Assembly (NCBI GenBank): GCA_965113315.1
Contig: OZ220366.1
Source of the DNA: Podarcis vaucheri
Taxonomy: Eukaryota
Reading direction: 5' to 3' (one strand)
DNA: 64,000 nt
A program made the translations under genes and the position numbers. The notes under the pieces were generated by a model. That model made no database searches and was not told the DNA's origin. It was given only the letters and a program-made list of their open reading frames with translations. Numbering within the stretch: the stretch's first letter is position 1; each line of letters opens with the position of its first letter. Shown piece after piece: positions 2,865 through 29,800 of the stretch.

Positions 2865-3349
2865 CTAAAGCTCAGTGTTCAGTTTCCTTGGTGGTACGAA
2901 ATCTTCACGGCGGACCCAGATGACCTCTTCACTGTTGCCTTCCATGCTGCCATTAATTCCAGAGAGAGCAGCTTGCTTCTTTAGCTGAGTCATTCTGGAC
3001 GCATGCGTCCCCAAAGCAAACCGCACTTTGTCGCCTCGGCACGACTGGCTGCTTGTAATGGAAGCCGCCTGTAGCTGCTCCTGAAGTTCTTTTTCCACCA
3101 TGGTGCTCCGCAGAGGCTCGCAGTATTCTTCGTCGTCACTGAGAATGTCGGTTTCTTTAATGTCCTCTTGCTCTTCGTACTGGCCGAGGTCAAACTGTTC
3201 TTCTACCCAGCGGTCAGTGTCCTTGTTGTTGGAGGCCTGCTGGGGCTCTTTCTCAGGACTGCTGGCGAACACGGCATCTGAATCAATGGTAAATCTGTTT
3301 CGAGCCAGCCTCCGCCGCCGCCTCCCAAGAGACTTGCTTGGGGCAGACA
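2865..3349 (-). CDS. TIAM1: TIAM1 last coding exon ([14 protein letters not shown]...RKLNTEL*)
   Basis: acag|TG acceptor, TAG stop at 2865-2867; within ORF 2865..3461. Confidence 0.96.
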
Positions 3350-6300
3350 CTGTGTGCACACACAAAAATAAAACCCCAGATGCTTTTACAAACAATTGGT
3401 TACAAAACACTTCCCCCCAGAATTTGGCTTCCAAATCCTTTTTCACAATTATATTAGTCAAGGGTCAGCTGCCAAGAAGAAGGTTGGGCAACACCAACGT
3501 TTTCTGTGCAGGCAACTCGAATTTTAGACAGTTTCTGGGAATTATAAATTTTGCCAGTGACCTTTGAGAAATCTGGCCTCCAGCAGCTCCTCACTCTAGG
3601 ATAATGGACCCCATTTTGTTGCCTGTTTGCTTTTCGTGCCAGGGCCATAGTGACAAACAGCCAATCCTGCTTTGTGGAAAGGGTGGTTGGTATTTAATGG
3701 TCCTCCATCTTTGCAGCTCTATTATTCTATGGCACAGGTTGGGAACCTTTTGTCAGCCTGAGGTGCCATATGCCCTCATGGGAAGACTTCCAGGGTCTGC
3801 CTGCCAGAGATGGCAAGAGGCAAAAATGGCTGCAGTAGCAGAAGTGACTCTTACTTTGGTACATACAGTGGGTTGCATTCTAGCCATGCAAAAGGCAGAG
3901 GTGCGGAGCTACGCTGGTGAAGGGTGTGGCCTGATGGAAGGACTGCAGCTTGCGGAGAGTTCCAAAGGCTGGATTCAGAGGCTTGGCGTTTGGCCCGCAG
4001 GCTTGAACTTTCCTGTTCTAAGATCTCCTTAGAGGGAAAACATGCTTTCCCAAGAATTCTGCATGTCTTGCAGTGAATGCCATAGCTTTTGATGGGGGGA
4101 TGCATTTCTGCACCCAGAAGAAACAAGCAATGGGAGATGCATGAAGAAATGCTGTTCAATAAGATTCTCTGACACATGCACCTCCCCTTCAAACTTCAGG
4201 CCATTCACTACATGACAAATGGTGTCCATGCTCAATAGGTCTCTGATGAACTGAAGCAACCAAAAATGCCCCGTGTGTAAATGCAGACCACCCTACTTTC
4301 TTATGAAATGGACCAAAAAAATGTATTTAAGGAAGGAACCAATTTCCTATTCCTTCTTGCTTAATTGTGAGCTTAAGAGGGGAAAGTGAGTTAAGGTTAT
4401 ACTCTCCTCCCCAGAAGTCCGCATAGCACAGGCTAAGTATGGATCAGATCCAGAGATTGTAGGGAACTGATAATGAATAGATGCTAAAGAAGACTGTACA
4501 AGTCCATGGATGTGTGTCTATTCCAAAGGAGAAGCAAACCCCTTTGGTCATTCTCAAGGTCTTCCCAGCAACTGTGTAGCTATTCCAGTACAAGTTGCTT
4601 GCTTGTGAATTAGGCTCAAACCTAATTCTAAGCTGTTTGATACTTAACCACCAATCAGAAACACCCCTAAACCTGACATCATAAAGTTAACAGTCAGGCT
4701 GTAGAATTTTAAAGTGGAGAAAAAGGTAGAGCATTACACAGTTCCTGCTCTCTTGAGACAAATGTTCTGCTATTTAGGAACAAAAGGAGTCAGCAGGAAA
4801 TTAAGGGAGCTCTACAGCAGAAAGGAAAACGCCAGTTTGTTTTTCCTCAGCACTCATAACCAGGCCTCTGAGGTGCAGAGTATTGCACAAAAAGTCCTGC
4901 TGTGAATATTATTGGTCTGTTACAAAAGAGGTAAAAATACCCAGGATACATGGTTAATTTTTCACTTAGATCCAGGATAAAAATCCCGTAAAGCTCCATA
5001 TTTTGCTTTTTTCTTGAAGACAGCACAACTTTTCCTCTCTACTCTGTCCCACAATTATACGCTTTCCAGTTTGTTAGTTTGCTGAAGGTCAACTGATAAT
5101 GTGATAATGCAACCACCTGCCCTAAGTCATGGGAAATACAGGTAGTCCCCACCCCCAAAAGGCAGCCTATGAAATAAATAAAAGATGGAGACAGAAGCTG
5201 AAAAGTCAGCAATTTCCCTCTTGCTTCAAGGTCTACTACTAAATTGTGTAGGCATGGATCCACCTTACAAGGGGTCTTCTAAGGACAGAGACACTTGCCT
5301 TCCTAAACGTAAATGTCTGCCTATTGGTAACACATCTGATGGACTAGTAAATAACCCCACCTGGATAACTTTCAAGCTTGAAAGGTTCTTGCCAAAGTAC
5401 AATCCCCCACACCCTGAGCAATGTGCTTTTAAAGGAAGAGTGAGATTTGAACTCATGAGGAACATGAAAGCACCACCACCATTTTGCACAAATAAAGAAC
5501 TCAGGCGTGTCTTACAGCGGTGGTTGGGTTACCGGGATCTTGAAAAGCTGTAACCCTACAGTACCTGCCCTGTTCATAGCTGGCCTTGCACCTTTTAAAG
5601 CACTGAGTCTTTTTCCTCCAAAAGGAACATACTGCTGGGATGAAGGCAAACTTTCAGTTTTAAGAAGCTGCCTTCTGTGCTTGTCGCGTAATATTGAGTG
5701 AATAGACTTCAGAAAGTCCTTCCGATGATCTGGGGAACTAGATGAAAGAAAGGAAAAAAGGAACACAAGTAAGGCACCAAGCTAGCAAAACTGTTTGCAT
5801 TTGCATTCTATTTATTTAACTTAATTTGCTGTATAATGTTGCAAGCTGCTGTACAATCTTAAGTGAGTTCACCCTCACAAGAATCCTGTTAGATCAGCCA
5901 CTGTTCTAACACTACAGACCGGGAGCTAAGGAGCAGAACAATGTCAAGGCCACAGAAAGACCCTGGCAATGATCAGAATCAAACCCAGGTCTTCCAGTTC
6001 TATGCCCAGCTTTCCTCAACATTATCTAGTCCTCTGTGTAACTATTGATCTGTTCATTCATCTTTTGTTGGCTGCTCTTGGCTGTGGCTTTCAGAGTGGC
6101 TTACAATAAACAGTAACAATAAGCTTCATTACAAGAGTCAAATATATTTGTATATTTAAAAACAGCACTCTCTTACCTACAACAAAGGTGGAATGACCTC
6201 TCTGGCCTGCCTTCAGACTCAGATTTCACATGAACAATCTCACAGACAGAATTGGCCTCTGCGTCTAGAAGGAAGATAAAAACACTTTAAAAAAACCCAG

Positions 6301-9300
6301 TGTTTTGAATTTTCATGGCTACTACGGCCATCCCCCGTGACTGACAAAAGGGAGAGCTATGCAAGATTCACCAGAACTGTGTGAGCATCAGCTTCTAAAG
6401 ACTGCACCAAATGAGAGTTTGGGTACTTCCAGAGGAGCCACAGGCTGCACAATCCACATTTTAAAGCAAAGAGAATGAAATAAGAGAACAGCCTTTGGGA
6501 TGATCTCTTATTGCTTATTCTGGGGCTTCAAGGGCAACATTGCCAGTCGTAAGTTGTACTCTTGAGCCTGCATGTTACAGCACAACAGAGAAAAGAATTG
6601 TAGGCTCACTTGCCACAAAACTATTCCGCTATCTGTTTTTAGGGCTTCATGCAGCTTCTCTGCTTGCTAGTGGGCTTCCAGCTGTTCAACAAGATTCAGC
6701 TTTCACCAGAGTGAACCTAACAACTCATACAGCCAGGCCACATGCAGTGTACACCAGCAGCGCATATTAGGAATACTTGTTTCATGCACTTCAAAAAAGT
6801 GTCTCTCTATTTATTCTCCATGACAGCAGTTTCTGGAGATCAGATCAGACAATAGAATTTTTGTAGACCGATATGCAGTACTACAAGACAAGTGAGTTGC
6901 AATCAAGGAAGGACCAGATGAACATCAATGCTGACCTAAACCACCTTCCAAGTTGGAAACACAATCTGGCAGCTTGAGGTTTAAACCTTTCTTTATATAT
7001 GTAGGAAATGAACGGTGGTTTGCTTGTTTTAATGGTTGGTCAGCAACATGAAGCCACTGGTTAAAAGGGATTGGGAATGCTCTGAAATAAGAAAAACTAA
7101 CATTGCTATAGCATAGGACCCAGTCGTTCCCAGAAAGTCTTTTGAGTGACTCAAGCTCAGCAGTGATCAACCTCAAATAAGGCTGCCTTGCATGCCTAAA
7201 CAAGCATTTCACTGAACATGGCAAATGAGGCCTGGGATCATGGCAGGATGATTCATTCAGTGCTCAGAAGAATGGCTTTGAGTGGCTTACAGAATATTAA
7301 AGGAATCAGTCACAATACTCCATCAAAATAAAAAATTTAACAGGCAAAGATTTAAGCCATTTCCTCTTTTAAAATCAGTCAAAATTTAGGCAAAGGTTTG
7401 CTGACATCTCTCACTTATGTGGCGGCAGCAGGGAGGCCATCCCTGAGCAAGATGTCTCAGCACCACCAAGGTGTTACCACCACCAAAGAGGCTCTAGAGT
7501 TAATGGTGAACCACTGCAATTAAATGGCAGGGTACCTGCTTCCTCAAAGGATCTGGAAGCACAAAAACTGGGGAGGCTTCCTTCAGTACATAGGTCATGT
7601 GGGACATTTAAGGTTAAAACCAGAATAATGAACTGCAGTCAGAAAGAAGTAATTAATCCATGTTTTTGGAGTGAAATTATATGGGTTCTACACTCGTGCC
7701 AGTGTTAATAATGAATTTTGGAACCATGGTATTTTACAAACTTTTTTCAAGGGCAAGCCCACACAGAGTTCACTACAGCAGAGATAGTGTGTTTTAATTT
7801 CAGGAGAAGCTGAACAGCCACATTTGCCACACCAAAAGGCATAGTATGCTAGACAGTTGCTGTATTTTTTCAGTCTTTCATTTGGTTTTACATCGAAGAG
7901 TCTGTTGAGGTTATTTTCTATTTTTCTGTTGTTGGAACTTGCTTTTATTTGCTCCATTTTTTGTACGTATGTTTTGGTACCTGCCTTGAATGTCTGGGAA
8001 AGCACAAAGGTTTTTAAGTAAGATAAACACATCATGGATGTTGGCTCATATTATGGCTCTTATGATCTGTATTGTTTTCTTGGTACTGTTGCTGTGGGTT
8101 GGTTTGTCATGATCTTTGGCTAGAACAACAAACTTACATTGTAGTAAAAAAATAAATTAAAAGCAGATCCAAACACAAAGAAAAATGTTTGCTTGCTACC
8201 TGCGCTTGCCGGTGCCCGAACTTGCAGAGCTTCTAAAGGAATCATGTGACGGAAACGGAATGGGTCTGAGTCTTCGTATATTGAAGCCCTGTGTGATCCT
8301 CCCTATATAAGAGCAGGGAGAGAACCATGCCTATTATTATTTTTATAGCACTGACTTCACACCTGTGGTCTGAAGTATCCACAGAAATAAAGCTAATGAA
8401 ACTCTTTCCTACGAATGTGTTTTCCCTTTCCTTTAGCAATCTATCTCTGCCCATTTCTTAAGAATAATGTTGCTAGCCAGCACTGCATTCAGGTTTCTTT
8501 CATTCCACTTGCCTGGGAATGAAAGGCAATCACTCCTCTGTTGACCACCTCCCCATCCCACAGACCTGAGAAAACTTTAGGTTCAAATATCTCACAAATA
8601 CTATTTGTCGGTTTTATTTTGCAATGTGGTGTACTGTCCATAGTATACTGTTTGCAGCTTCTTCCAGATCTGGGAACTGGTAATGACTTATCAAAGTCCG
8701 CTCAGCTTCTCTCAGCTAGTAAAGTACTAAGGCAGTGTTTCTCAATCTTTTTCAACCCATGCCCTCTTTTAACTAACATTTAAATCCCATACCCCCTTCA
8801 AACCTGGCTCCCCTAATTATTTTATTTGAATTTTCAAAAGGATTAAAACACTCCTGGCCCTCCGATCTACAATAGTCCCCCCCAACGCCCCTCCACATTT
8901 GAGAAACACTGCACTGTACAATGCAAGGTGTGCAATGCATTGTGTAGTTGCTGACTATGTCCAAAATAGCAACTGCAAGTGCCTGCAATGATTCTGAAAA
9001 TGCCATATGAAATTGAGGAGAGCTGCTTAATATAAGCAACAGTTGTGCTCAGTTCCTTCAAAAGAATTGGGGTGAGGTGCACTGTCCACCTCAAGTTGCC
9101 CATCTGACTTTACTGGAAGTCACCTGCGATGTTGCCTATCCATTGGGAGGCTACCTTTGAAGGATAGCATTGTGCCCCTCAAAGGCATCCTTTGAGGGGC
9201 ACAGCTTCCCAGCTGAGATGCAACCTGTGAGCACAATGCTATCTGTACACTTGGAGGTGGCATGCTTCTGAATACGAGCTGCTGAAACAAACAGGAGGAA

Positions 9301-12300
9301 AGAGCGCTGTTCCACTCAGATCCTGCTTTCTGGGTTTCTCGCAAGCATTTGGTTGGCCACTGTGAGAACAGGATGCTGTCCTAGACGGGCCATTGATCTG
9401 ATACAACAGGGCTCTTCCTGTGTTCTTAAAGCTAACAGAAAGATGGAGTCCTTCAAAGGCAGCCCGGCTTCTGCCTCCACATCCCTTCCTGAGAGGTGAC
9501 TTCACATGTGTAAGTCTATCTACTGGGAACTGCAAGGAAGCTTCAGCATGTGTTGGTTTTAAAGGAGTTACTGATAGTGTTATTTACTGTAATAGAATAA
9601 CTTACCAATTTTTTCTTCTGTTTGGAGCCATCTTTATAGACAAGAACCACAGCAGTTTTGAATACTAGAGAGGGACCAAAATATAGAGAAAACCAGTAAT
9701 TTGTAGCATGGAATAGATGGTTAAGTCAAAGGAGTGGGAAAAGGGGAGGTGGATACATCCCCAAGTACATATCCCATGCACCCAAACAACTAAGTTTATG
9801 CTTGGAAATTTCAAATGATTATCACATCATCATCATTTTCGTATTTATACCCCACCCATCTAACTGGGTTGTCCCAGCCTCTCTGGGCGGCTCCCAAAAT
9901 ATATAAAAACATAATAACATTATCATTGAAATATTTTACAATAAAAAACATGGTTGGGAAATATTATCATATGTAATGCTGATACATTAGCTTTCAAAAC
10001 AATATAGTGATGGTGGGGGGTTATGAATGCAAAACATTAAAAAGACATAGCTTATTAAAAATATGAAATAATTTATACTACCTAGAATAGATGCTGACAA
10101 AATCAAGTGTCAGTACACTGTTTCCCCCCCACCCCAACTGCTACAGATATATTATTATACCTTTGCATGCAAGTATTCTAAATCATGCATGCAAGTATTC
10201 TAAATATATCTCAATCTACTGGTATATCTCTGATTGGTTTGCAGTAAATAGGCATGGATTTCTGACTTCCCCTCATCCTAACATTATATTCCTGAAATGA
10301 AGAAAGATTAAGGTAAACAGGAATGGGTTTGAGCATGGAAGGAGTGTGAGCACCATTCAGCTCTGATACCGAAAGCAAATTTATGGAATTTAATACTAAA
10401 TTCATGTCTTTTGCATTAGGCTCTGGTTGGTGGATCTAAGTAAGGGCTCTAATAAAAAACGAAGCACATCTCACAAACCTGAAGTCTGCCCACCATACTT
10501 CTAGATAATAGCTTTATATTAAAACATTACAGACACTTAAACTGGTTATCATCAAACTACATATTGTGGGAATTATTTTATGCATTATAATGGGATTACT
10601 CCAGAGCAAGCAGTTTAATGATTACCAGTTAATTTTCTTGATTGAATAAGGTTCCTATAAGCAATCAACATAATAGTAGCTCATATATTTAAAAAGGACA
10701 AAATTCAGTGAATAAAGTCCCAGATATCCATAAGTTACAAAGCCAATGTATTACTTCAAAAGAGTTTTTTTTAAAATCCATGCTGCTAATCTTATTAAAT
10801 TGTCATGCATTCCTAGTTCATCTGCAGGCAATTAATTCTGCCACACTGCTGTGCTAAGGAAAGGAACCAGCATCAACATTTACATGGGAGTAAAATGTAG
10901 GCCAATAGCCCTGATGGATCTAAATTGAGGATGGAAGGAGAAACTGGTTGATCATGGTTAGACACCATTTTCAACCAGAGCAGACTGGGCTCCTAAATTT
11001 ACATGACTGACACGTGAAGAGTAATTTTCAGGATGTGCTGATTCAGTTCAGCCAAAACCTATAAGCTCATGGTACCCATGCCTAAGGGACGCGGGTGGCG
11101 CTGTGGGTTAAACCACAGAGCCTAGGATTTGCTGATCAGAAGGTCGGCGATTCAAATCCCCGCTACGGGGTGAGCTCCCGTTGCTCGGTCCCTGCTCCTG
11201 CCAACCTAGCAGTTTGAAAGCACGTCGTCAAAGTGCAAGTAGATAAATAGGTACCGCTCCGGCGGGAAGGTAAACGGTGTTTCCGTGCACTGCTCTGGTT
11301 CGCCAGAAGCGGCTTAGTCATGCTGACCCGGAAGCTGTACACCGGCTCCCTTGGCCAATAAAGCAAGATGAGCGCCGCAACCCCAGAGTCGGTCACGACT
11401 GGACCTAAAGGTCAGGGGTCCCTTTACCTTTACCCATGCCTAACCTACTCACAATACAGAGGCGATTTCATGAACTATACATTCCACATGGCAAGAGGAG
11501 CAATTTTGGTGCATGGAAGTCCTGTGGCACAACAGACACTACTTTTTTTTTAGGGGAAGGTACTTTTTCTTGCACTTACTGTTTATTGCTAAAGTAGTTT
11601 ACATTTAAGCACTGGCCTGGTAGTCCACCTCTAGCAGCAAGGACTCCTATGCAGGCCAAACAGCAGGGATAGAACACTCTGCACCTCCCCTTTGCTTAGC
11701 ATAAAAGCCAAGCTACCAGAAGAAGAAAGCCCCCTCTTCTGTGCCCAGCACAAAAATTTAGCAGGCTGCTGCAAGCGGAACACAGCTCCTCATTTCTCTT
11801 CTGCCAGGCCCCAGCACTGTTGCAAGCTAGCAACTTTTGTGGGCTTATTTGCAAGGCTGTGTTAAAGCACTAACCTGGAATGGTAGGAGACGCCCCTGGA
11901 GCTGTGACCCCAGAAACAATCACTGGCAAATTCTGCCTAAGTTCTAAATGAAAACTATCATTTGCTTTGTTTTGGGGGGGGGAAAGCACATACCAAATGC
12001 TGCCAATTCAGGTTCCTTTTTCCACTTCCCAAGCGATGTGGGAGGATTAAGCCAGATGACTGTGGTGTGCAAAAGTAAGTCTCCCATAGAAAGATCTGCA
12101 ACCTGCCAACCAGAGAAACGCAGATAGAAAAGAAACGTCAGTGTGCATTTTAAAAACTGGTTTCATAAAATTATTGACACTGAAGCATGCAGGTGAATTC
12201 TTGTAATGGGATTTTAAAATGATGGCTTTGCAAGTCTAAACAAAAGAAATGCTTCAAAAACTGCAACGTGTGTCAAACGAAGGCCTGGAGGAGCAGATCT

Positions 12301-15300
12301 GGCCCCTGGGCCTGAGGTTCTCCATTCCTGGCCTACTGCAGGCTGTACTCCCTACCCCAAATGGAAGAGAGAAGATGCACTGGCTGGTGCTGAAAAGCAA
12401 GGCATGTGAATTTCATGTCCTCAGCATCAGCTGATGCTAGGAACAAGACAAGCAGTTCCAATTTTAGGCATTCCTAGTATATTTAAGATAATGTTTTTTC
12501 TTTGAATGATGCATGGGTAAATGTAATCTAACATAAACCAATGAAACCCATACAATTTATTGGCTAAGATTTCCTTGAATGACAGCCCTAGTCCTAACAA
12601 TTTCCATTTTCAGCTTCCAGATAGGCTTTCTTTACAGGTATTAAACATTACTTTCTAATGCACCATTGGCCACATCATTGTTTCGAGGAATATAGGCTGA
12701 AAGCGAAGGAAAAGGAAACAAACCGAAGCAGCCTGGATATATAGATAGGACAGTCATATAGTGCATGGGTTGGATAGTTATGCATTATTTATTTAATTTA
12801 ATAATTTATAAATCAGTTCCACTGGGGCATCCCAAAGTGATTTAAAATATAACAAAAATATAAAACAGGCTTATATAAAAGAGTTGCATATGTAAAAACA
12901 ATTACAACTTATATGTAACAGTTTCAGACAAGAGACATAAAATCAGTTTAAACCCAGCACAGATATCATCTGGGATAAAGATCTCCTTTCAGAAGGCTAT
13001 ATATACCATACCAACACAGTACCTGAACCAGAATTTATACAGTTGCCACCAAGGCGTGTCTTCTGGAGTGTATGTGTTGTTTATGCTTTGTGAGACAGTG
13101 CAAGAAAATAGAACTAACAATTAGAAATAAGAGATTAAATTCTTAAGTCACAAAAGATATATCATCCTTTAAAAAAAATAATCAAAATATCTTCCAAACT
13201 ATCAAGAACATGCCCTTACCTCTTTTTTGTCTCCTGTTTGCTCTGCAATGAGCTGGTCAAACACAGCACCATATTCCTCATGGATTTTCTGCATTTCATT
13301 AATATGGCTGGCAACTTTGTTCATTGTTTTTATGGCCACTAGAAGAAGAAAGGCAAAGAAACAGAAAGCAATGAGAGCAGAGATATCAGACTGCATTACT
13401 ATCCTTTGGGAGATTTTGTCTGCATTACATTTCTACTGCATTTTTAGAATATATAGACAATTGTCCTTGTGCTCTTGGTTTGCAACACAACACCTTCCAT
13501 CACAATGTATTTGACCTGCTGGCCGGGAATAGGTTATTCTTTTTCCTGCGTTATCTTTTCATTATGTCCCTCAGTCTGCAGCAATGCTGTGATTTATCAG
13601 CCAAACAGGAGAGTTAGTGCAGGCTGGGCAGAGTGTGTGAAGAAGCAGTGATTAAATTTGGACTCACTGAACTACAGTCTTGATAGTACTGAGGGACAGT
13701 AGCTGTGCAATTTTATTTTTAATGAATCACAACCAGTTAGGCAGCCATGCAATGCATACTACAGTATTGCACATACACCGTTTTTAACTACTCAGCAACA
13801 CATGCAAAACTGAATGCTCTGCATGTGTTAATGCAACAGCATGACCACCCACTGGTGTGATCAATTACAGAACAGAATGTGCAGGTGTTGCCCTGTGTAT
13901 GCACTCCTAGAGACTATCTTCAAGCACATAGCTTCTCAGTTAAGATCCCTAAAGTTTCCAGGGTGGGTTGACCTTATCTTTTCTGTACTGCTTGAAGGGC
14001 TTTGGCACATCTGAGAACATGCAACAAAACATCCCTTTATCCCTACCCCACATCTTCATAAGCAAGGACCAATTAAACCTCTAGGTGCAGGTTCCCCACA
14101 TACCTTTAGCTACATGAACTCCTTTCAAGAGTTACAAATGTGGGTCACCTTGTAACATGTTAAGTGGCTTTACAGAACACAAGAAGGGCCCTCCTGGATT
14201 AGACCAAAGGCTTACCTGGTCCAGCATTCTGGTCTCCTGCAGCTGTCTGTGGGACACTTGCAAGTAGGATGCAGGAACATTTGACAAAAACAAATGCGTA
14301 ATAAAACTTGGCACACGTTAAGCTTTAAAATCGCACTCAATATCAGCTTACCATCCAGGTGATAATGCTCTTCACTGTCTGCATCAGTGAGGGCAAAGAG
14401 TTCTTTCAGCAAAAGAGGGTACTTCAATATCCTCTGGATGGGTTTGATGAGGTACGACTCTAGCGTGGACGAGTGTTGTCGTCTGGGATTCTGAGCATCC
14501 AAAAAAGCCTTAAACGCAGTGTCTGTCTTAGCTAAAGGATTGGAAATAAAAAGCAACTCTCAGGACATGACAAAAATGTTTCGCTTCATTTTTTAAAAAT
14601 ATATATTATTACATATTATTTATCTACCACTCTCTCTGCCTGAAGGTACTCAAGGTGGCAAACAAAATACAGATTTACAATAAGATGAATATTATTAAAT
14701 TTTAAGGTGTAGCCACCACCCATATGGTTTGTGGGGTGACAGATTTCTCAAGCACCATTCCAACAAGAAAACAGGAAGGCAGGTGATGAGGGTGGTGGGG
14801 AAAGCGGTGAGAAAAATACCCAAAACTCAAGCATGGAAATGTGACTTCATGAAAATGGATACGGAAACAGTCAGTTGAATGAGGTGCCTATAATGGAATC
14901 AGCTGACATGCACAGGGTTTGTACAGGGAGGTAAGGGAGTGTAAGTTTGCACATGGACTGCATTTTTTTTTAATCCACTTGGAAGGCACAAGAGAAAAGT
15001 ATTGTTGGCTGGCAGTATTTGAAGATTGTGGTATGCAGCTTCATGGGCAGGTCATTAACAGAAGGCCTCTTCCCCTCCTAGGGCTTGCTCCCTGGAGGAG
15101 AGGGGGACTGTGGCACAGTGCTAAAGCAAACGCTTTACCTGCAGAGAGGTCTTAGGTTCAATCTCAGGCGTTTCAAGACACAACTAGGAAAGACTCCTGC
15201 CTGAAATCCTGGACAGCCCCTGCTAGATGGATCAATATTGATCTAGATGGACCAGTGGCCCAGCTTCCTCCCTGTGGTTTCCCATCAGATATTAAATACT

Positions 15301-18300
15301 GTATGGTGATTACATCCTCCCAACGCCATTTGAACTTCCTTGGTTGCCAGAAAGCTGATTAACGTTATATGACAATACAAGAAGCAACTCTCCATCTCCT
15401 CTCCTACCTAGAGCTACCTGCCTCATCCCACCCATAGCACCAGCCAACACATCCTCTATGTACACCATCCATGATAAATATTTGTATGGACTAGCAGAAA
15501 GGAGGCTTCATGAAATGGCTCCCTCTTTGGCCTCCCCCACTTGATATGTGCACAGACCTGAATGCAGTCCAGGGATCAATGGATCCCTGTGCAAAAATAA
15601 ATCAACCTTATGTTACACTACAGAACTTGCAACTTCCTTTTCCACCATCTCGTTTGTTTGGGGAAGAGTTTGCTGATACAAGCACCCCAGTTTCCAGAAG
15701 ATGAATTACTTAAGCAAAGAGAACTCTGAATAGGTTTGTTACCATCCAATATACAAGAGAAAAAAAGAGAGAAAAAGTGACACACATATTGTATCACTCA
15801 TCATCCTGGTATTAAACCTGTATTAACAGTTTTGAAAGACCTCAAAAGATCGCACAGCAAAATAATCCATGTCTGTATTCACAGGGCTACAAGCACATAT
15901 AGCTCTAGTATTGCCGAAACCCTGCACGTAGTGATGCAATGTTACGGCTTGAGAGAGGCTACCACACAATTTGAGAATAAGGGAGGTATGTTGCGTTCAT
16001 ATAGCTCTTACCTTTCACAAGAACTTTTGGAACTTTTGTATGGCTGGCACAAAAGGCACTGTAGAGCTTGAAACGATCAGCATAATAAAGGAATGACCCA
16101 CCCAAGGAAAATAACACTTTCTAGGATCAAGAGAATGGAAAGCAGAGAATTTTAGCTGGTTTGTTTGTTTTTTAATAGTGCATTCAGACTTTCTATAAAG
16201 TATACAATACTTTTTCTCATCCCTCCGCCCATATCATACGACTAGAGCTTTTGAGACCAGAAGGGGAAGGAAGTTGGTAATTCGGAATACAAGGAATGTC
16301 TTAACTATCAACCGATTTCATTGGCAAGCCTCAGTTTCAAGCACAATAAGAATGTAAAAAAAAAAATGCACAAGATTCTACTTAGAACATTTCTATTGAC
16401 AAAAAGCCTTGACGTGGGGGCAGGGGGAAAGGGCTACTGGAGTTTCCCTCTCTTCCTAATAAAATCTTAAAATGTGAATTCACAGGAATTTATTTATTTA
16501 TTTATTTAATTCATAAACTTCCCTTTATCCAAGGATCACAGGGCAGTTTATAGTATTTACCCCCTCCCTACATTTTGCCATCTGGACATTTATGATGGAT
16601 GCTTTTGGGGACCAATAAGAAAACACTGGCCCCTTTGGAGGAAGGTGGACATTTTCATTTCTGAAGGAGGTAGTTCAGAAATCTAGAATTCCCTCCTACC
16701 TTCAGAGGGAATGAGGAAAGTTTCTGGGTAGCATCCATAGCAACAGACCATCAAAAGCTGCTTCATGAAGGGAGAGATCACTACCAAGAGACTGACCTTA
16801 TTATTTATTTAATGCACAGCCCTACAAGAAACCCACACCTAGGGATCATTTACCACACAATCCTGCTCTCTTACTGAGGTCAGATGAAAGTAAAAAACTG
16901 AAACAATCTGCACTTAAATGAAAAAGATTTATAGAACATGCACATATTCCCGTTTAGTAATGTTATAACCTAATAATACAATATTTAAAACAGTTTTCAG
17001 TTCTTCTGATACTGCTTCTTTGCAATTATTTTTTACTTTTTTTCTTTACATTTCTTTTATGTATTATGTAATTCCTGGTAACAGGAAAGAGAAGGGTAAT
17101 AAAGAAGTGGCTTTCTTTTCTGCTTTTTTGTCAAGAGCAAACAGAATGCAGTTTATAGTTCAGATTTCCACAGTTATTTTCTAGAAAATGGCACACTAGC
17201 CTTGCCTGAAATGAGGTCTTAAGACAAGACAATGAAATTTCTGTTGTTTACTCTTCAACAAAAATACAAGTGAGAAACTGGATATGAAAACATCCTTATG
17301 GCATACTATGAATTGAATTGAATTGAATTAAATTAAATTAATGGAGAGTTAGGAGTAATGCTAATGAATAATTAAAATAAATGCTTACTTTAAACTGGTC
17401 AACTTTTTCAAGCTTTTCCAGATCTGGAACCAACCTCACCCCATCTTCAAGCGTTTTCAGGAATTCAACCTGAAATGCCACCATTTCAGTCAAATTTCCA
17501 AAGAGAACGTCAAGCTGGTGAGAAAGAAATAGGGAAACATGGGTTGAAATTTATTCCTCTCACATGAAATATGTAACAACACATTATCTCTACATTTTTA
17601 GACTCCTAAATGCCAGCAATCTGATTTTAGTATAAAAGTCTAATCCTGCTAACCAGCCTTTATTTGAACATGTTTGCCCTTACAAATCCTTGGCAATATC
17701 AGTCATCAGCTTCATTATGCTAAAAAATCCATTTCAGAATTTCACGGTTCGAATCTACACTGCATCTTGTTTAATTTCAGCCAACAAACCTTCCTGAACA
17801 ATATGCTGGGAAAAGCTCCATACCTCTTCTTGAGTGAGGAATGTTTCCTTTTGCAGAGGCATCAGGTATCTCTCCATTAGACAATTTAAATCCTGGAAGT
17901 AAAAGAATATTACTTTAGATGCATTTTCTCCTAATCCTAGAAAGTATAGGTTTAAAGCATCTTCCTAGAGCTAGTTTGCACATAATGTAAACAGAATTTA
18001 GCAAAACGTAAAAGAAGACTCAGCACGTCTGATCTAAGCATTGGGCTCATACTCTCCCCCAACCCTCTCTTCATTCAGTGTGGTAAAGAAGGGTTTCTGC
18101 CTTGTTAACTTTCAGTTGCAAAGAACCCCTACATAGTGAACCATAAATTGTGGTAAAACACAATGATTGGTTAAACAAGCCATCTTAATAAACTATTGGC
18201 TAGGTCACATGACACAGTAAACAAAGCCAAGGCTTACAGGGACCATGCAAACATGTGGGCTCCCAGAGAGAGCCATTTGCAGCCACTTAGCTCCTGCCAG

Positions 18301-21300
18301 AACTTTGACATCAGCGGGGAATAGAAAAATGCCCTGCTCTACCAGGTTTGTGACTAAGAGACAGAAGTTTAAGACTAGGGATTTCACAAACAATCTAATG
18401 GGAGTGCTTGCAAAGGCGAACATGCTTTCTCTGGTGAGCAGGATACAGAGGAGCAGCTACTACTCCCACCTGACTCTAAGTTTCCACCACCACCACCCTT
18501 TCTTGTTCACCTCACTAAGCTTATCCAGGACTGGAGAAGATGGGAGATGGCGGTGGCGATGCTCAGAGCACCCATGCCCTTGTGAGGATTACACATTCCA
18601 GCATCACTTGTGGGAAACTGAGGGTTGTACCAATTTCCCCGCAGGGATGCTAGGGTGCGCAGTCCCAAGTGCTTTTCTGTGTCTGCTTCTTCCCTTTCTC
18701 CTGCATCAGCCAAGGTTTTCAGGCCATGGGGTGGGCAGGTGAAGACAATGGACAGTCCAGTTGCCCATGCGTTTTATGTGCAGGCTTCAGGGGAGCACAC
18801 ACAAAGGATCAAGCCCCTTTCAGGGTGAGCCCATCCCTCCACACTGCCTTTTATACATGACTATTAAGCATTTCCCAAAAGCAGCAGTTCACCTTGACAT
18901 ATGTGCGTTCTGTTTCAAGGAGTTCACAAATAACCTTGCGCAGTTTGTCAGCATCGGTTAGCTGTCTTGTAGTGGCTTGCTGAGGCCCAGTAAATTCCTG
19001 AGGGGTCACACAAGAGTCAGACGAATTCATCTCATGAAGACTGCGACAAAAAGCAGCAACCTGTTCTGTGCTCTTGAAAATTAAAAACACACATATAGCC
19101 GATGTTATTTGCCAGAAACAATGGTGCCATCGTTACCAGTCCCATTGAAATGTCCAGATTAAGCTATCATCATTGTTTCTCCGATTTAAAAAACGTCAAA
19201 TTACCGGGCTCTTCTAAAGCAAAATGTGGCATATTACATCGACACCAGAAGAATGCAAATTACACATGATTACTTTTCTAAAGGAACTATGCGATGCTGT
19301 ACACAAGGTAATTAAAGCATGCTACAAGCCCAGTCCTGAAGCCTGCTGCACTAGGAAATAGCTGCTTAGGACAGGGTTTACCAACTGCTGCATCAGCACA
19401 ACTTCACAAGAGGTTATATCAACAGTGCAGAAATGTTATTCAGATGTCGCAGTAAGAGAGCTGGCTCAAATGTCCAGGTCTGAGATGCCAATTACTGAGA
19501 TATTCACACCCTTAGGAGTTTGCTAGAATTGCTTGACACAAGATTGTTCCCAGGAGGCCAAGCAGAGAAGACACTGAATATGCCTTTTATTTTAAACTGA
19601 CAGGTTTTACTACCACCCGCTTGTTTACCTCATTTGCCATTTTGTTGTTGCTGAGGGAAAGGGGCACGATGGCACTCCACAATACAGAAATTGCCCAGCT
19701 GCGCTACTATCTGGACAGGGATAGCCTAATTTCTGTTCTCTATGCTCTGATAATCTCTAGGTTTGATTACTGCAACATGTTATATGTAGGGCTGCCTCTG
19801 AAGACAGTTCAGAAACTTCCACTGGTGTAGAATTGCCATGTTGCTCACTGGGAGAAGACAATTTCAGCATATTACACCATTTCTGGTCCAGCTGAACTGG
19901 TTGCCAATTAAGTTTCTGGGCCCAATTCAAAGTGCTGGCTTTGACCTATAAAGCCTTAAATGGATTAGGACCTCACTGAGGTGGCTATCCATTTGTGCAA
20001 TGCTCTCCCCAGGAAGGCTCATCTGGCACCATCATTACTTATCTTTACATGCCAGGTGTTTGTTTGATTAACCTTCTATGGCTTTTTAAATGTGTTGGTG
20101 GGAGAAGGGTTACTGATTTATGTTATGAAATGTCCTGTGACCTTCAAATGAAGGGCAGTATACAAATTTAATTAATATGACAACAACAGCAGAAAGGTCC
20201 AGAAGAACTGACAATAATCTAGACTGTTGCTGACCAGAAATGTCAATTAGAGGGTTGGAAGCTTGTAGCCACTATCTGACATCAAGCAAAAGTTTCTACA
20301 AAGCCTATTATTAGTTGATTAGCTCAAGAGCAGGAAAGCACAACACATACAGGACACAGTAGAGCATGAGACTCTTAATCTCAGAGTTGAGGGTTCAAGC
20401 CCCATGTTGGGCAAAAGATTCCTGCATTGCAGGGGGTTGGAGTAGATGACCCTTGGGGTCCCTTCCAACACTCCATTTCTACAATATACCAGGAGAGTAA
20501 ACAGGAGCATTTTTGTTGGGGTCAAGGAATATGGAGATCTGAACTGGAAGGGGTGTTTCTGGTTCCAGTTCTTAGAAGAGGGAAATGTACCCTAATCATC
20601 CACAGATCATGAGGACCAAATGAACCTCTCCAGCTACCATATGCCCCTTGGAGAGCATATCAAAGGTATGTAGGAAACCAGAAAGCAATTGAGTTTCTTT
20701 ATTGGTGTGTGGGATAGGTAAGGTTGAGTAATTGAAACAGAGACTTCAGCACAAGGTTATTTTTAGAGACTCTCTCCTACTGAATCTTTGCAGGATTTAG
20801 CTTGTGCTAACAGAAAGCTAAAAACACACACACAGCACTGACCCAATAAAAGTTATATAGCTTATGAAAATGTTATTTCATATTGCAATATGTGTTTGTA
20901 TGTGAATATCATACAATGTGTATGTAATATACACACATATTCCACCAAGTCTTGCAAGTTTGCATTTGATTGTGAAGTTTATGGTTTGCTGAACCAGAAA
21001 CAGAGCTCTAGTGCCTTATTGAACATTGTGTTTTGTTTTTTTGTGTGATTTCCATGAAGACCAATGAATTTAAATACATGACAAAAGGCATATGAGGCCA
21101 GCAGGTTTATAAGCCAGCAGGGGTTATATGGACATGCCTAACACAATTTTGATTGCTTAGAAAAAGGACCACCATAGTTGTGCAAATTGCAGTGGTCACA
21201 TATAAAGCCAAGCCCCACACAGAGGAACAGTTTGACGCACAAGACATCAAAGCACAAATAAAAGTTTTAAAGAGAACTACAATCATGGACTTATTGACAG

Positions 21301-23765
21301 GACATGTCAATATCCTGACAAATACCGGTTCATAACAATTTTCAGAAGTTTTTACACAAACTTTTCTATCTTTAGACAAATTGCCTGCTATTATATCCAG
21401 AAGGAACAACACGTGATTCTTTAACATGCCAAAGATACAAAATACAGCCGAAAAACTGTACATGGAATTCTTAGCTGCTATAAGCATGAGCTTTCATAGG
21501 CAAGAATCTACTTCATCTGAGACCTGCTTAATCACATATCTTTAAAGTTAACTGATAGTAAAAGCAATAATTATCTCATCCACTAATATGGATCTTTTCT
21601 TGAAAAATATGTGTATTAAAGATCAGCATTTATTACATATTTTAAAGAGAAGTAGTAATTGCTGGAGATCCAAATTGTCATTCACTTCGGTTGGAAATAA
21701 TCTGCATTTTTAGGCTTGCAGAATTAGATGCACCCAAGGACCAATAAAAGCCACATTAAAAATGCTCCCCCCCTTTCCACAATACAATAACATTTTGCTC
21801 CCCAAGATTTCTACCTCATCCAACTATAAAACAGCTGAATCTCAAATTTCACTGCTTATTTAATGTTCTTTCAGCTGGATAACAAATTTCACCCCCATCT
21901 CACCTTGTGTGATATTCTGGTGACCCAGATTATTGCATGTTCAAGGCAAGACTTGGAAAAAACCCCAATTTGCTTTGATAGCATCAGCCAATTATTCCTT
22001 TAAAATGCAGCATAACAACATAACATTCTCTCATTATTTCCGCTATATGGTAGATCTCACCATATGAAGCATATGCCGAAGAGAATCAGAAGCTCTCCCA
22101 GTGCCTTCATTTCTGGGCTTACGTTTAACTCTCCAATAAACTGACATCACCAAAACGATGTTACTCTGACAATACCATTATTCGCCATTTTCAGCAATAA
22201 AAAATGGACGGAGGGTAGACACACCCCACATCGAGATTTCTTGACCTACTTTATGGGTAAAAAAAAAAATACATATGCTCATTCCAGTTCATAGTATTCC
22301 TGACTGCTGGATACCTTCTTGCATGTTAATGAGAATGGGCAGCTACCAGATTCCTCTTGTATTCCTCTTCAGACTTTACACGCTCAATAGAGTCAACTAG
22401 AATGAAATTCTCTGATTTAAGCTGCAGAGTCAGTCCTTAATTCTCCCTTTCAAGGAGCTTTCGAAAAAGTACTCAAGCAAGGACAGCTTAAACTTGAAAG
22501 GAAGAAGCAAAATCCCCGGTGGAAAATAAATGTCTATTGCCTGAGGCTCCGGAGAGCTGATTGGCTACAACCTGTGCTGCACAAGAATATTAACATTTCC
22601 AGAAATAAAGCAGGTTGCCAATTAGAAATCTTTGAAAGCCAATAGCTGGTAAGATATTTTACAAATCATACCAGTAGACGGTGAGAGAACGTAATTAATG
22701 TGCTTTGAATGCAAGAAGCAAAACGACTGTCCTTCATTGCTAAAATTTAAGGGGGAAACATGTTCAAAATACTTTAATAATTTGAACAAAAATCATGACT
22801 CTTTGCTACCATCGCTAGCTAATTAGCTGCAGTGCTAAGATATAGCTGCCTTAATTTAGATGAAAGGCAACAAACAGCCAGCAGTTTTTTCTCCCCAAAA
22901 GGGGATTTGAAATAAAAATATCAAGTCAAAACAGGGCAGAGGGTGCATTTTACACCCACACAACCAAATCAGCACAGCTCATTTCGGGAATGAGTAGTAC
23001 AAAATATATTTGCCCATTCAGAGTGGGTACAATCCACACTCTAATTTAGCTTTGTGATATCATTATGTAGGAAAATTAGACTGAACAGGTTTCATGCAGA
23101 AAACCAGATTTGGCTATATCACGAATGAAGAAAGACAGAAAACCAAATCAGAGTATAGACAATGCTTTTTGCTCTTGCTCTGAATTAGCACCATGGTGTT
23201 GTCACTTAGCCAATCTGATGGGCTGTAATGACAGGTTGTTATCGTGATGGCCATGTGATCCTTGACTGGCTCAGATTCTCTAAAGAAGAAGCCCTTTGAG
23301 CTTTTCGTTTGCTTGCTTTAAATTATACTGAGCCTGCGGATTGGGGAGAGAAGCAGCCCAAAAAAGAGGGGGGGCTATACCAGAAAAGCAAGGGGGGCTA
23401 TATAAAACCTTTCAGCCTGTTGAAATCTCCTTTCCACCCCCCAAAAAACATTTTCATGGGTACCAATTCAACCCATCTGTGTGTACATATATGTACATCG
23501 TGTGTATTACAGGATAATACAATGGCTCTCCTCCCGCAGGGAGCATCTCAGTGACAGCCAGACCACCCCCAGTCAGATGTGAATTGAACAGCACAATGCT
23601 GTTAAAGTGTGATTGGTTTTTTTGGCAGAAAGCAAAGAGATGCAGTTGGAAACATCACTGGGATGAGAGGTCAACCAAATCCTTCCTTCTAGAGGTTTGC
23701 TTTTCCCAGCTTCATCCTATATTGCAGTACATCAATTTTGTCCAAAAGAAATAAATGGATACCAT

Positions 23766-23808
<43 letters not shown>

Positions 23809-26800
23809 ATACTTCCAAGCCTGGATCAAGCCTAAGAAGGTTTGTTCTTTTCTATACTACTGACCTAAGTATGTGTGGTACAAAGCGGCTAATAAACATT
23901 TGGGGGTAGGCATTTAAGACTTATTAGAAACACTGTCCTACGAAGACTAATGATGCAACTGATATAACATAGTCTGCAGAAGAAATCTAACTGTAGATGT
24001 ACAGTGGTGCCCCGCAAGACGAATGCCTCGCAATACAAAAAACTCGCTAGACGAAAGGTTTTTCCGTTCGCGATTTGCCTCGCAAGATGAATTTCCCCTA
24101 TGGGCTTGCTTCGCAAGACGAAAACGTCTCGCGACTTTTTTTCTTTGACTAAAAACAAAGACATGTTTTGTTTATAAAGTTAATTTATTTTCCCTTACAT
24201 TTTTGAACTGCTCTTTACAGTATGTGTGACTTTAAAGAGCAGTTAATAAACTGTTGTTGTACCAAATTTGGCTTTGTTTGGACTTTTTTTGACCATAGGA
24301 ACGCATTAATTGATTTTCAATGCATTCCTATGGGATTTCATGCTTCGCAAGACGAAAAATTCGCTAGACGACAAAAATTGCGGAACGAATTAATTTCGTC
24401 TTGCGGGGCACCACTGTACAAAAGCACATTTAGTGTTGTACAAGGAAGGTGCTATTGCTGGAAAGCTTTGATTTAATTCAGCATAAATATAATGCTATGA
24501 TAGAATTAGGAATGAAGTACGTAAAAGAACCACTTTTCAAGCATACACCCACATAAGGTTAATCAAGTGAGCTCCTATAATCTTTTGTTATTAAAGAGTC
24601 ATAAATCACATAAGAATATAGGAAGAATGTGCTGTGCTAATGTGCTATGCATTATATATGAACGATTCAACTCAAAATACGAATTCATTTGCAATGCTTT
24701 CTCCAGTGTAAACACACACCTTTAACACAGGTTAAACAAGCAGCGTAAACACACACCTTTAAAACCTTTAATAAAAATCCAGAATTAATTCAAAAGTATG
24801 TCTCTCTTTAAAAACAAAACATGCATTTCAGCACATTAAGAGCACATTAAATAAATGGCATTTCGTTTATACAAAGCAAGTTTCCATTCCTTATTGTATT
24901 CTTCTGCTACAGAAGAGATTACACAAGTTAGAAAGGTATTACACTCGTCTACTGAGTATTAATGACTCAGCTAGTTTAAGAAAGTTGGTCATAAACGATG
25001 TATGTTTTGCTACATAGAGCTGACAAGCTACTGCATTTTCCCCTAATATACATATTTATTAACCTTAAAAACATATCTTTATCTAAGAGGCGGGTTCCTA
25101 AACTGTGGTCCGTGGACCAGCTGTAGTCTGAGCTTCATTTAAATGGTCCATGGCATGTCCACATTAAATATTCATATTGATCCCTAATTGTATGTTTATT
25201 GATTCTTTTATTTCTTATTTTATTGCACAACAATCTGAATTCTATAGAATTCAAATTGTGATGCAATGAAATATGTTATATACAAAACAAAAGAAGCATA
25301 AACATACAATTAAAAATAATACTTCATCCAGCAAAGTGCACTGCAATTGCTACAACAAGCAGAATAATAATTAAGTGATTCCACCAAGACCATCAGCAAT
25401 ATTCAAGTGGTCTATGGGGGAGAAAGTTTGGGACCACTGATCTAAGACATCTGCAGCTGAAAAGAAGAAAATCTCAGGACATGACCACTGCAGTTTGCAA
25501 AATGTAAAAATCTAGATAATAGCACAAACACCAGCATAAGAATATTTTAAAACTATGAACCAGTTCCCACACTACTCACTTTTAAAAATGAGACATACCC
25601 TTTCTAAACACCTTATTAATCCAGCAAAGACCATACTTAACATTTTAAGATCTACATACCTCTAGAGGTCAGAACTTCCCTTCTTTTCTAAGCCAGAAAA
25701 CCCACCCAGCATCACTTACTATAATAGGTCCTGCAGGAAACCAGAGTGCAAACTTCAACAGCCTCCTGCTTGTCATATGAGCTCTGCATCTGAGCTCTAG
25801 TAGCTGATGCAATTTTGCAGCTGCTTCAAGCTTGGGAATACCTCCTGCTAGCAGACTTCCACTGTCTAGCTATCAAAGGAAGGGCTATAGGCTAGTTAGA
25901 CAAAGGGGCAGGAAATCTGAGGCCATGAGGTTTTTCCTTCCTTTCCACTATGATATCCTAACAACACCATTTGTGGATTAATTCGTAACCAAGAGCCACC
26001 TCCCACAAGATTACTTTCTTACCTGGATACAATTTTGAGATTGGATATTTCATGTAACCCACATAAATATAGTCACGTATGATAATTACACACACATTTA
26101 TTTTTTTACGTGTACACCCCACCAAATATATGATATACCACCAAATTCAGCTTCCTGCCTTGTGTTAATAAACATTAAAGTGCTTGTCACATGTGACAAC
26201 CTGCATGTATTACAAACGTGGAATTTCATTCACAAAAAGTGGCATTCATTTAATAAATTTGTAATATGTGAAGCTGTCTTCAGGCAGAAGTTGTAATTAG
26301 TAAACTATTATGGGGAAACCATTGCAATACAGGAACACAAAAGGAAGCTCAGACCTACTTACCTTATCTGTTACTAACCATCAGAAAAATTCTGAAGGGG
26401 TTACACGCTTTCAGTGGAGTGTAAAATGAAAGCACTCATCAAACAACTTTTGAAATGCTTGTCCTCTTAATGCTGAATTGTATTTTTGCACACACAGTTA
26501 CAAAAAAAAACCAACCTCGTCTTCACAGGGCACCCATAAAAATAAACTCATATGTTAATAAGCTCCCAATTGGGATGGGTATCCCAATTAATAATCCAGT
26601 TGTTTAGTCAGTTTAATTTAATTGTTGAGTTCCACTACAATTAAAAGGTAGAACACCTAACATTTCTTTCCATTTAGGATGCCTCCATGCAAACTCTGCA
26701 ACAAGCAAAAATATATTTGAGCATATCATATATTAAGAATTATACGCAGAGGCAGGGCTGCATGTGAAAATGTCGCAAATGGCATTCAGGGAGACTCACA

Positions 26801-29800
26801 ACCAAAGCAAAGGGGCTGTAGTGTTTTATATTCAAGATCATTATTACCACACCCACCCATGATGGGCAAAGGGGGAGCATTTGGGTACAGCAGGTGGTGT
26901 CGAGCTATAATCAAGGCTCTAATTGGGTTCATTCCATATCATGTAAACACTTAAAAAAAAAAAAACACCCCAAGGTAAACATTATCCTGGAAGAGACGCT
27001 CTAATCGCACACAGCTGTGAAGTCAGCATGCCAGCTTTTAGCCTGCAGTGATTCTGCTATTTACAATGTGAAAATGAAAGTTTCACACCTTGCCAGTTTT
27101 ATCACCCTCACTGGACGACTCCAAGACATGCACTTCTGCCTCTTCTGGAGTTGTCTCAGCACAGCTGTCCTGATCATTGCAGAACAAGTGTCCTGTTAGG
27201 ATGAGACAGAAGTGTGAAATAATGGGTTGAACAACAATTCAGAAGTGCAACACAGCAAATACTGTTATGTCATGAGCAAACACAAACACTTTTTAGCTCT
27301 CCAGTGCCATTATTAGAGCACACTTCACTTAGATCACTTGAAACTGCCATTAATGGAGCCTATTACTATTTGCAAAAAGTATACATCAGAGTGGGGTGGG
27401 GTCAGAGTAAAACTGAGTATTTTTCATAGCTTTGTGTGTAGTGTTGCTTGCATGAAACAACAAACATTTATGACACTAGATCTGCGGGAATGGGAGCAGT
27501 AATAATGAGATGACTTGATATATATTTAAAATTACCTACATTCTGCTCTAATAAGTAATACATTATGTTCATATATTGCTTCCAGAAATACCTTGAAGAG
27601 CTCAAAATAAAATACTGTATCTCAGATGGGCACAACAGTACTGCTTTTATTGGTCATTAAATGGTTGTTTTAATTTAATTGTCGTTGGCCACTTGAGTTC
27701 TGCTGAGGTAAGGCAGGCTACTAATGTTTTAAATAAATACATAATGAACAAGTAGTTTGTCAAATGCACCATGCAAATTGCCATGTGATCTACTGGTAAA
27801 TGCCATAGGCTTTTAAAATTCTGCTGGCAAAATTGTTTCTTAACAACCTGAAAATTTGATATAATATTGATATTATTTCATATAATCTGATATAATAGGC
27901 AAACTCACAATTGCTACGTGAGTTTTAAGTCTGTTGATGAAACATGCTGAAGAGAGCAAAACTCAGAAAGAGCAATGGTGTATTTGTTTCATATATGACT
28001 CAAATCAAGAAGATACCTCAAATAATTGATATCAAAGCTGAAGTAAAATCCCTAATTGTTCAACTGGCTTGATTACTTGAGAATAGTTTTTAAATAATTA
28101 TAAAAAAATCTAACACCATGGCACTGAAAATATATTACTTGAATAATAGATTTCATATTTAATCAAAATACTACCTATTCTTTAAAATGCCACCGACATA
28201 TCCAATCTTGTTTGAGCAGCTTCATTTTGTCTACTATGATCAACAGTCCCTTTAAAGCCTTGTGGAATCTCACCCTATTCTGATGAGCCTAACACTTTTT
28301 ATAGTTATCTGGGCCCTCTTTCCTGTTATAGGAAAAATGTGCCTTAATCTACTTCCTGCAGTATAGACTCCAGTCCCAGATAGAGAGCAAATGTTCATTT
28401 GGGCCTTAAGTGAACAGCTGAACACATGGAATGCTTTTTACTGTCTGCATCTATTTATTGGAAAACATGTTTGTGTGTACAAATAATTTCTACTGCTTGA
28501 TATCATCAAATCCTTAAGTGGTTTACAAAAAAAGTAATGCAAAAACATTCAATAAAATTTCCTAAAACCAAAACTGTGTGTCACAAATAAAAATGAGTCA
28601 TGTGTTATTGTGCATGTACACACATGCACAAACAAACAAACACACACAGAGCTGTCCCTATCAATTTAATGAAACCATATATTTTTACAATTGCTATTTA
28701 AACACAGTGCAGTAGTGTATGTTTACAGTTCACCTTTTAAAAACTTTTTATGGCACTCTGTAGTACTACGAAACTCTGGAAAAGACACATTCAACAGCGT
28801 GCAACTGCATGCTTCTTGTTCACATGAAACTGCAGCTTCATTTATTGTTCAGTGTGATGTGTGAACCAGACCACTGTGCCCAACCAAAATTGCACCAGGG
28901 ATTTACGCACATGAATTATTCAAGTTACTATCTGGCTTGGATAATATACTGCCCTCAGTGAGGAGCATCTGACAGTGCAGTAAGTCATGTAAGAAGCTTC
29001 CTGGACATGGCCAGAACAATGTTACTTCACAGAAAGTAACAATGTTACTTCACAGAAAGTATGGGGCAGAAAATAAATTCAATAAATGAAATAATAAAAA
29101 AGAAAAAAGTGTAGCTTTAAACTCTGCTGGCTACAAAACGTTCACTCTGGAATCCTTAAAAAGTGAGATTTGAAAACAAGAATGAATGTTATTAAAAATT
29201 CATTTCCTGCTTCTTGAAGCTTTCCCTCCCTATGCTATGCAGTGCAAAGGGGCTCAGGAACAAGGCTGGCTGATGGTCCTGCACCTTGGTGCTTTGCTGA
29301 TATACAGCATGGGGATAGGGGTCAACCATGGAAGCACATTCCTTCTTCCAACCTAATGCACACTTCCAGGAGATTATATCCTGTTCAGGGCTCAAGCAGG
29401 TCAGTTCCCTCTCCCCCTTTTCCGTTTTCCTCAGTTTTTACCTTACACTTCAAACATGTTGTTCCTCAACTGACCTCAACCATAGACTAAATTGTGCTTC
29501 TGCTGCTGCTCTTTTTCTTCTTCTTCTTCTTTTTTGCAGAAGTTGCAAACATCAGTGATATCCCAGAGTTCGTGACTATCTTTCCTACCATGCAAAAAGC
29601 CTTATCTTTTGTGCTGGAAAGCAGAAAAAGGAAAGATCTGGGGAGCTTCCTGTCTAGCTGCTTATTGCGCTTGTGTTTTCACACATAGGTGATATGGCAC
29701 AGCTAGTTATCCCATACTTTCCACTACAATTTCCCATCACTTTTCTCTCAAGACTTTTTGCGGCTTGAAAAGTAACAAGGAAATTGTGCTTAGAAAGTGT

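Follow-up and report, generated by a model that had tools for sequence, protein, structure and literature searches.

A probable lizard orthologue of an ancient alternative first exon in TIAM1

N-terminal truncations of TIAM1 made in the laboratory, such as C1199, lose the regulatory part of the protein and are stabilised and activated exchange factors. Two N-terminally truncated isoforms of human TIAM1 have also been detected (NP_001340613.1 and NP_001340614.1; 71 and 68 kDa), and one of them is the main TIAM1 species in a glioblastoma culture, as shown by RT-PCR, Sanger sequencing, western blot and re-expression (PMC8551657). According to the same report and the older work cited there, loss of the N-terminus makes TIAM1 stable and constitutively active. 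Thus, a TIAM1 consisting of the DH-PH part already exists in mammals. The paralogue TIAM2 likewise has a short isoform, TIAM2S, which is produced from its own internal promoter (PMC7408714).

Here we analysed a 64,000-nucleotide stretch of the lizard Podarcis vaucheri (contig OZ220366.1), referred to below as the window, in which a hidden internal first exon of TIAM1 had been proposed from the letters of the DNA. The short isoforms of human TIAM1 are N-terminally truncated, contain only the DH and second PH (PH2) domains and occur as two forms about 25 aa apart, and the form predicted for the lizard resembles them in these respects.

The TIAM1 locus and the candidate first exon

TIAM1 lies on the minus strand across the window, from an exon at about 55.9 kb, which reaches into the first PH domain, to the stop codon at 2868. 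The features discussed here are collected in Table 1. Since the canonical upstream exon of the full-length mRNA ends at 27089, the host intron of the candidate spans 27088-19073 (8 kb). The first shared exon follows an acceptor AG at 19074-19073, preceded by ttcaag, and opens in phase 0 with AGC ACA GAA, encoding STE. The internal acceptor within it has 18997 as its first exon base, and orthologues use the matching junction for a form that is 25 aa shorter and continues with EFTGPQ or DSTGPQ (the 599-aa form of mammals, the 603/615-aa forms of birds and Podarcis raffonei X7). This acceptor probably corresponds to the "exon 20" difference described in PMC8551657.

The shared exons are co-linear by tblastn and match Podarcis raffonei TIAM1 at 94-100%, the last exon at 161/161. 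Pfam searches with single downstream exons recovered the RhoGEF domain (PF00621, 53 bits) and the second PH domain of Tiam1 (PF23014, 46.7 and 32.6 bits). The exons were analysed singly, and the predicted length of 628 aa is the sum of the 29 aa of the candidate and the 599 aa that the Podarcis orthologue maps between STEQ and the stop codon; it agrees with the 628-aa forms of turtles and birds.

Table 1 Features of the TIAM1 locus in the window
Feature	Position	Strand	Description	Evidence
Canonical upstream exon	27089..27192	minus	upstream exon of full-length mRNA	RNA contig end matches 27093-27122 at 29/30
Second alternative first exon	25720..25776	minus	ATG ACA AGC...ATT ATA/gtaagt, 19 codons	Podarcis raffonei X7, 18/19
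In-frame stop	22178..22180	minus	TAA, 11 codons 5' of ATG	sequence
Candidate alternative first exon, coding part	22061..22147	minus	ATG and 28 codons	sequence and homology
5' splice site of candidate	22055..22060	minus	gtgaga, phase 0, abuts last codon	sequence, donor score
First shared exon	18893..19072	minus	STEQVAAF...ETERTYVK, 60 codons, DH start	sequence and mRNA contigs
Internal acceptor	18997..18999	minus	cccctcag/GAATTT, 75 nt into first DH exon; AG at 18999-18998	orthologue junctions
Remaining shared exons	2865..17892	minus	DH, second PH, C-terminal tail, stop after RKLNTEL	tblastn, Pfam
Shared-exon pieces	17901-17821, 17517-17389, 16120-16004, 14532-14353, 13351-13217, 12105-11995, 9665-9606, 8302-8192, 6265-6179, 5733-5566, 3350-2868	minus		tblastn

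The candidate exon is situated inside the intron directly 5' of the STEQVAAF exon. Its minus-strand frame of 29 codons runs from the ATG at 22147-22145 to a final ATG codon, with 22061 as the last base, and abuts a phase-0 GT donor (ATG/gtgaga). The frame thus opens with an initiator ATG and is shut 5' of it by the TAA at 22180-22178, so the candidate cannot be read as an in-frame cassette. These features agree with the original prediction, which had described 29 minus-strand codons ending at a phase-0 donor that fits the STEQVAAF exon, an in-frame stop upstream and seven CpGs in about 22040-22235. The seven CpGs correspond to an observed/expected ratio of 0.79, compared with 0.28 for the whole intron, placing this segment in the top 5% of windows. 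The start codon lies in a weak context (gtgATGt), and up to eight upstream ATGs would precede it if transcription started near 22450-22600.

A CpG island around the exon was considered and rejected: CpGs are retained relative to the intron, GC is only 0.39-0.43 around the exon, and a richer patch lies elsewhere. This patch, at 23700-24500, has the highest CpG ratio of the entire window (up to 1.29 at GC 0.38), contains 16-nt tandem units (TGCCTCGCAAGACGAA-like) and adjoins an (AC)20 microsatellite at 23768-23807. A perfect NF-Y-type CCAAT box, AGCCAATCAG, is found at 22566-22557 on the minus strand, and the low-depth RNA contig coverage around the exon ends at 22560 in contig set X1 and at 22550 in X3, restarting only beyond 23200. 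The coverage end and the box near 22550-22566 could hint at a start region, though contigs cannot show starts. Local CpG retention and the CCAAT box are weak hints that the exon may have a promoter of its own.

Conservation of the N-terminal peptide

Searching all representatives with the DH1 exon mostly returned genomic ORFs that run across the exon and are uninformative for N-termini, together with a 602-aa bichir isoform (P0038), which was used to seed a word search. This search found short TIAM1 isoforms of about 600-650 aa across vertebrates, and the matches listed for the word searches with the bichir and a gecko protein were TIAM1 throughout. The residues before STEQ in the short isoforms are MMSALWKIKRKPRIENNDKSGDSIYRTLHL in primates, MSSLWKIKRKPRVENDRAGDSIYRTLHL in rodents, MSALWRGSRKLRSESAGRDGDSLFRMLYL or MSAPWRVNRKVKNEGAVRSGDSLYRMLYL in birds, MSILRKGKQRASSQNVKRSSESFYEMLHL in paddlefish and MSVLKWSKHSKRSSDSIYDMLHL in teleosts, while turtles have 30 residues at this place.

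The window peptide aligns with these N-termini by BLASTP, free of gaps, with 20/29 identities to turtle (69%, pairwise E 1e-13) and 13/29 to primates (45%, E 1e-8). With the turtle short isoform as the query, tblastn against the whole window gave 13 co-linear exons, the N-terminal one at 22150-22061 (E 1.6e-8), and the host intron held no other match. The window peptide matched 35 of the 185 fetched TIAM1 proteins, at the N-terminus every time, and by motif count the exon is present in 69 of the 185. In the orthologues, the first residue is the same Met or a Met directly before it, and the sequence passes into STEQ, or into the residues that follow the internal acceptor, precisely at the position of the window donor. 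Two proteins predicted from transcript assemblies (P0158 and P0166) open with the exon, and the great-ape isoforms of 624 and 599 aa have computed masses of 71.0 and 68.2 kDa.

The alignment displays an invariant M-S start followed by a run of basic residues, and the C-terminal half is well kept as (K/R)-(S/A)-x-(D/E)-S-hydrophobic-(Y/F)-x-M-L-(H/Y/Q)-L; the sole length difference is a frame-keeping gap of 6 codons in Albula and teleosts. The lizard peptide carries M-S-x-hydrophobic-(W/K/R), the basic run and the C-terminal motif, and departs at two otherwise well-kept positions, with R for Y/F at residue 24 and M for L at residue 29. The original prediction proposed that RVKRKPR may act as an alternative NLS or membrane-targeting patch; its basic character is conserved, but conservation is better in the C-terminal motif than in the basic run. 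No Pfam domain was found in the peptide, and its look-alikes in the ESM Atlas scored 0.81 or less, at chance level. We estimate that the exon is at least as old as the bony vertebrates.

These comparisons bear on several parts of the original prediction. A first exon rather than a cassette was correctly proposed, given the frame closed upstream and the orthologues that start at the same Met, and the DH-PH form of about 628 aa has its counterpart in orthologous annotated isoforms that share Met, length and junction. The suggestion that such an isoform may already be annotated in mammals was right as well, as BLASTP against annotated isoforms gave matches that include mammals. However, the exon is not "hidden" and its basic N-terminus is not "new": the peptide is the usual N-terminus of short TIAM1 isoforms that annotations list from fishes to humans, and in human cells the protein itself has been detected (PMC8551657). 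For squamates, the exon appears to be unlisted so far.

The peptide is homologous to the N-termini of these isoforms, its start codon, length, frame and exon end are conserved, and DH and PH2 are encoded downstream. We therefore consider it probable that, in this lizard, 22147-22061 on the minus strand represents an old first coding exon of TIAM1, the alternative one that begins the short form. As in other vertebrates, transcription would start inside the intron before the first DH exon. The first exon would supply an N-terminus of 23-30 residues and end in a phase-0 donor, which would be spliced either to the STEQVAAF exon at 19072 or to the acceptor 75 nt inside it at 18997. The product would be about 600-630 aa long and limited to DH, PH2 and the C-terminal tail; PHn-CC-Ex, RBD and PDZ would be missing from it, as would the myristoylation site and the PEST region. 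We infer that transcription and splicing of the exon persist in this lizard and yield a protein of about 628 aa, which, by analogy with the known truncated forms, may be stable and constitutively active owing to the loss of the N-terminus.

It is also conceivable, and we put it forward tentatively as a reading with nearly even prospects, that the 23-30-residue peptide is a functional module of its own, kept since the ancestor of ray-finned fishes and tetrapods. The peptide carries the basic run and (K/R)-S-x-(D/E)-S-hydrophobic-Y-x-M-L-H-L. As a module, it could determine where the short TIAM1, which is unmyristoylated, localises, how stable it is or which partner it binds. A possible side case is that a lineage-specific first exon is taking the place of the conserved one in lacertid lizards.

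RNA evidence and alternative explanations

The region 18800-23700 (4,901 letters) was compared with two RNA contig sets (X1 and X3) and two stranded raw-read runs (X19 and X20). The RNA data come from a close relative that shares about 0.8 of the words sampled from the window, all of which occur in the window's own source. The 4.7-kb mRNA contigs, at depths of 105 and 73, cover exactly 18892-19076 and overhang into the canonical upstream exon at 27093-27122 (29/30) and the next exon at 17862-17891 (30/30), joining the canonical exon to DH1. A joint from 22061 to 19072, or to the internal acceptor, was absent from the two assemblies and the two raw-read runs, which are of unspecified tissues and in which contigs drop rare forms. 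The candidate exon is covered only by contigs of depth 4-6 that remain co-linear with the genome through the donor (21794-22365 and 21858-22242), and other pieces of the intron are covered at a similar depth of 3.5-6.3. On the DH1 exon, the raw-read depth is 2-13, entirely from the strand that a minus-strand gene should give, and it is essentially zero over 20604-23700 (one bin at 0.39). The original prediction was to fall if both junction reads and conservation were lacking. Junction reads are indeed absent from the four RNA data sets, whereas vertebrates strongly conserve the ATG, its frame and the position of the donor.

Three further observations were made in the RNA data. The X1 contig (depth 4) is without 6 bases at 22082-22087, two codons near D21-S22, and keeps the frame, while X3 has these bases. 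Among the rows listed, the related species shows 0 substitutions in the 87-nt exon versus 8 in the roughly 480 nt of flanks covered, a difference that is not significant. The segments 19784-20111 and 20276-20603 reach summed RNA depths of hundreds to more than 10,000 on both strands, with most reads fitting only partly, and presumably represent interspersed repeats whose transcripts come from other parts of the genome.

The host intron holds a second alternative first exon at 25776-25720, with a strong gtaagt donor. Podarcis raffonei X7 joins an exon of this type to the internal acceptor (18997), and its peptide was not seen outside Podarcis raffonei. We regard it as a putative alternative first exon of the lizard lineage. 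In skink, gecko and Phrynosoma, the short forms listed have an internal Met, MNPSD, as their start. No squamate protein with the conserved N-terminus was among the matches listed for the turtle (residues 1-70) and gecko queries or among the 15 members listed, out of 67, for the cluster with the squamate isoforms; this is weak evidence of absence, since clusters at 90% hide squamate members inside bird and turtle clusters.

One alternative explanation takes the exon for a conserved relic: it would be the orthologue of the vertebrate first exon but have fallen out of use in lacertid lizards, whose short form would be made from 25776-25720 or from non-coding first exons instead. The four RNA data sets without spliced reads or contigs, the different first exon of the short isoform in the closest annotated species, the MNPSD starts of the other squamate short forms and the substitutions at two conserved positions are all consistent with disuse. 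However, the RNA amounts to four runs only, of unspecified tissue and from a related species, with assembled contigs that lose rare forms, and the squamate absence draws on 15 members, out of 67, of the cluster to which the squamate isoforms belong. Moreover, neither the ATG nor any of the 29 codons nor the GT donor is disrupted, and the peptide has kept a gap-free identity of 69% to turtle since the lepidosaur-archelosaur split, which requires long-lasting constraint. We therefore consider disuse in lacertids unlikely, while granting it some weight on account of the silent RNA, the changes at residues 24 and 29 and the listed squamate isoforms, which do not contain the exon.

Other N-termini unrelated to the peptide are also found on STEQ. 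These include MTHEFKK in bichir, MEK in paddlefish, MLAK and MILQK in frogs, a single M in sea turtles and an unrelated stretch of 26 aa in alligator (the proteins with tiny or unrelated N-termini are P0038, P0127, P0129, P0135, P0270 and P0274). In view of this variety, internal starts seem to have arisen repeatedly in the intron that precedes the DH region.

A second alternative is that a chance ORF stands before a chance GT in an 8-kb intron and is biologically meaningless. By sequence statistics alone, the candidate ORF and donor are unexceptional. With a simple matrix of approximate frequencies, the candidate donor scores 4.8 bits and the real DH1 donor 3.2 bits; seven GT sites in the intron score at least as high as the candidate, and two of these seven carry a phase-0 ATG-ORF. 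A look-alike ORF of 27 codons with a stronger donor (AAG/GTGAGA) lies at 21984-21904 on the minus strand, 80 nt from the candidate. Coincidence was at first rated likely, given the two pairs of ORF and donor and splicing that the RNA data do not support, and was dropped on the homology evidence. The peptide specifically resembles the N-termini of orthologous isoforms across bony vertebrates, and the exon sits in the correct place and phase, while the look-alike ORF, serving as a negative control, had no match among the 185 fetched TIAM1 proteins. The candidate rises above chance because of this homology to annotated N-termini, which the control does not share, and for practical purposes the homology refutes coincidence, which we regard as most improbable.

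It is just as hard to credit that the conserved element is mainly a non-coding regulatory one, an intronic enhancer or promoter with an incidental reading frame: local CpG retention and the NF-Y-like box would suit such a role, but the amino-acid sequence shows the conservation over a divergence that we estimate at more than 400 million years, neither the start codon nor the end of the exon has shifted, the lone indel keeps the frame, and gene models, two transcript assemblies and human protein data treat the exon as coding.

Significance and comparison with known short isoforms

The likeliest identity of the candidate thus remains the old first coding exon of short TIAM1, and the case illustrates that the bare letters of the DNA can be enough to recognise an alternative first exon that is genuine and deeply conserved, one that weak statistics and silent RNA data would have led us to dismiss wrongly. 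The biological gain is modest, as a short, probably deregulated DH-PH2 form of TIAM1 is already widely annotated and has been detected in human tumour cells. What deserves attention is the age and preservation of a small N-terminal peptide whose role nobody seems to have asked about, and the squamate annotations listed without the conserved exon, while a lizard-specific first exon shares its intron.

Compared with the human short isoforms, the link runs through the great apes, whose 624/599-aa orthologues match the human pair in size and start with MMSALWKIKRKPRIENNDKSGDSIYRTLHL, homologous to the window peptide (45% identical; the extra leading Met is absent from the window peptide). We infer the connection to the human accession from size and from these ape orthologues, since the accession was not among the cluster members listed (15 of 67). 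The acceptor for the shorter form of the human-type pair is present in the window at 18997. Expression is known in human cells, whereas the lizard exon is known from its sequence.

The isoforms of turtles and birds (Chelonia mydas X5, 628 aa; Pelodiscus X4, 629 aa; Taeniopygia X4, 621 aa; Anser X6, 628 aa) share with the lizard a first exon of 29-30 codons, the STEQVAAF junction and a total length that matches the predicted 628 aa. The segment RVKRKPRN is identical between turtles and the window peptide, and turtles and birds differ from the lizard in having Y/F at residue 24 and L at residue 29. Podarcis raffonei, the nearest relative with entries in the protein database, also has a short DH-PH2 form begun in the same intron, X7 (593 aa); unlike the candidate, X7 takes its first exon from the position corresponding to 25776-25720 and uses the acceptor at 18997.

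TIAM2S resembles the predicted short TIAM1 in that it contains only DH and PH and is without the myristoylation site, PH-CC-Ex, RBD and PDZ (PMC7408714). It is the product of a paralogous gene, and the likeness considered here is one of domain content and internal start. Constructs of the C1199 type are artificial and keep PHn-CC-Ex, RBD and PDZ, whereas the short isoform found in nature begins immediately in front of the DH domain and carries a conserved N-terminal peptide of its own.
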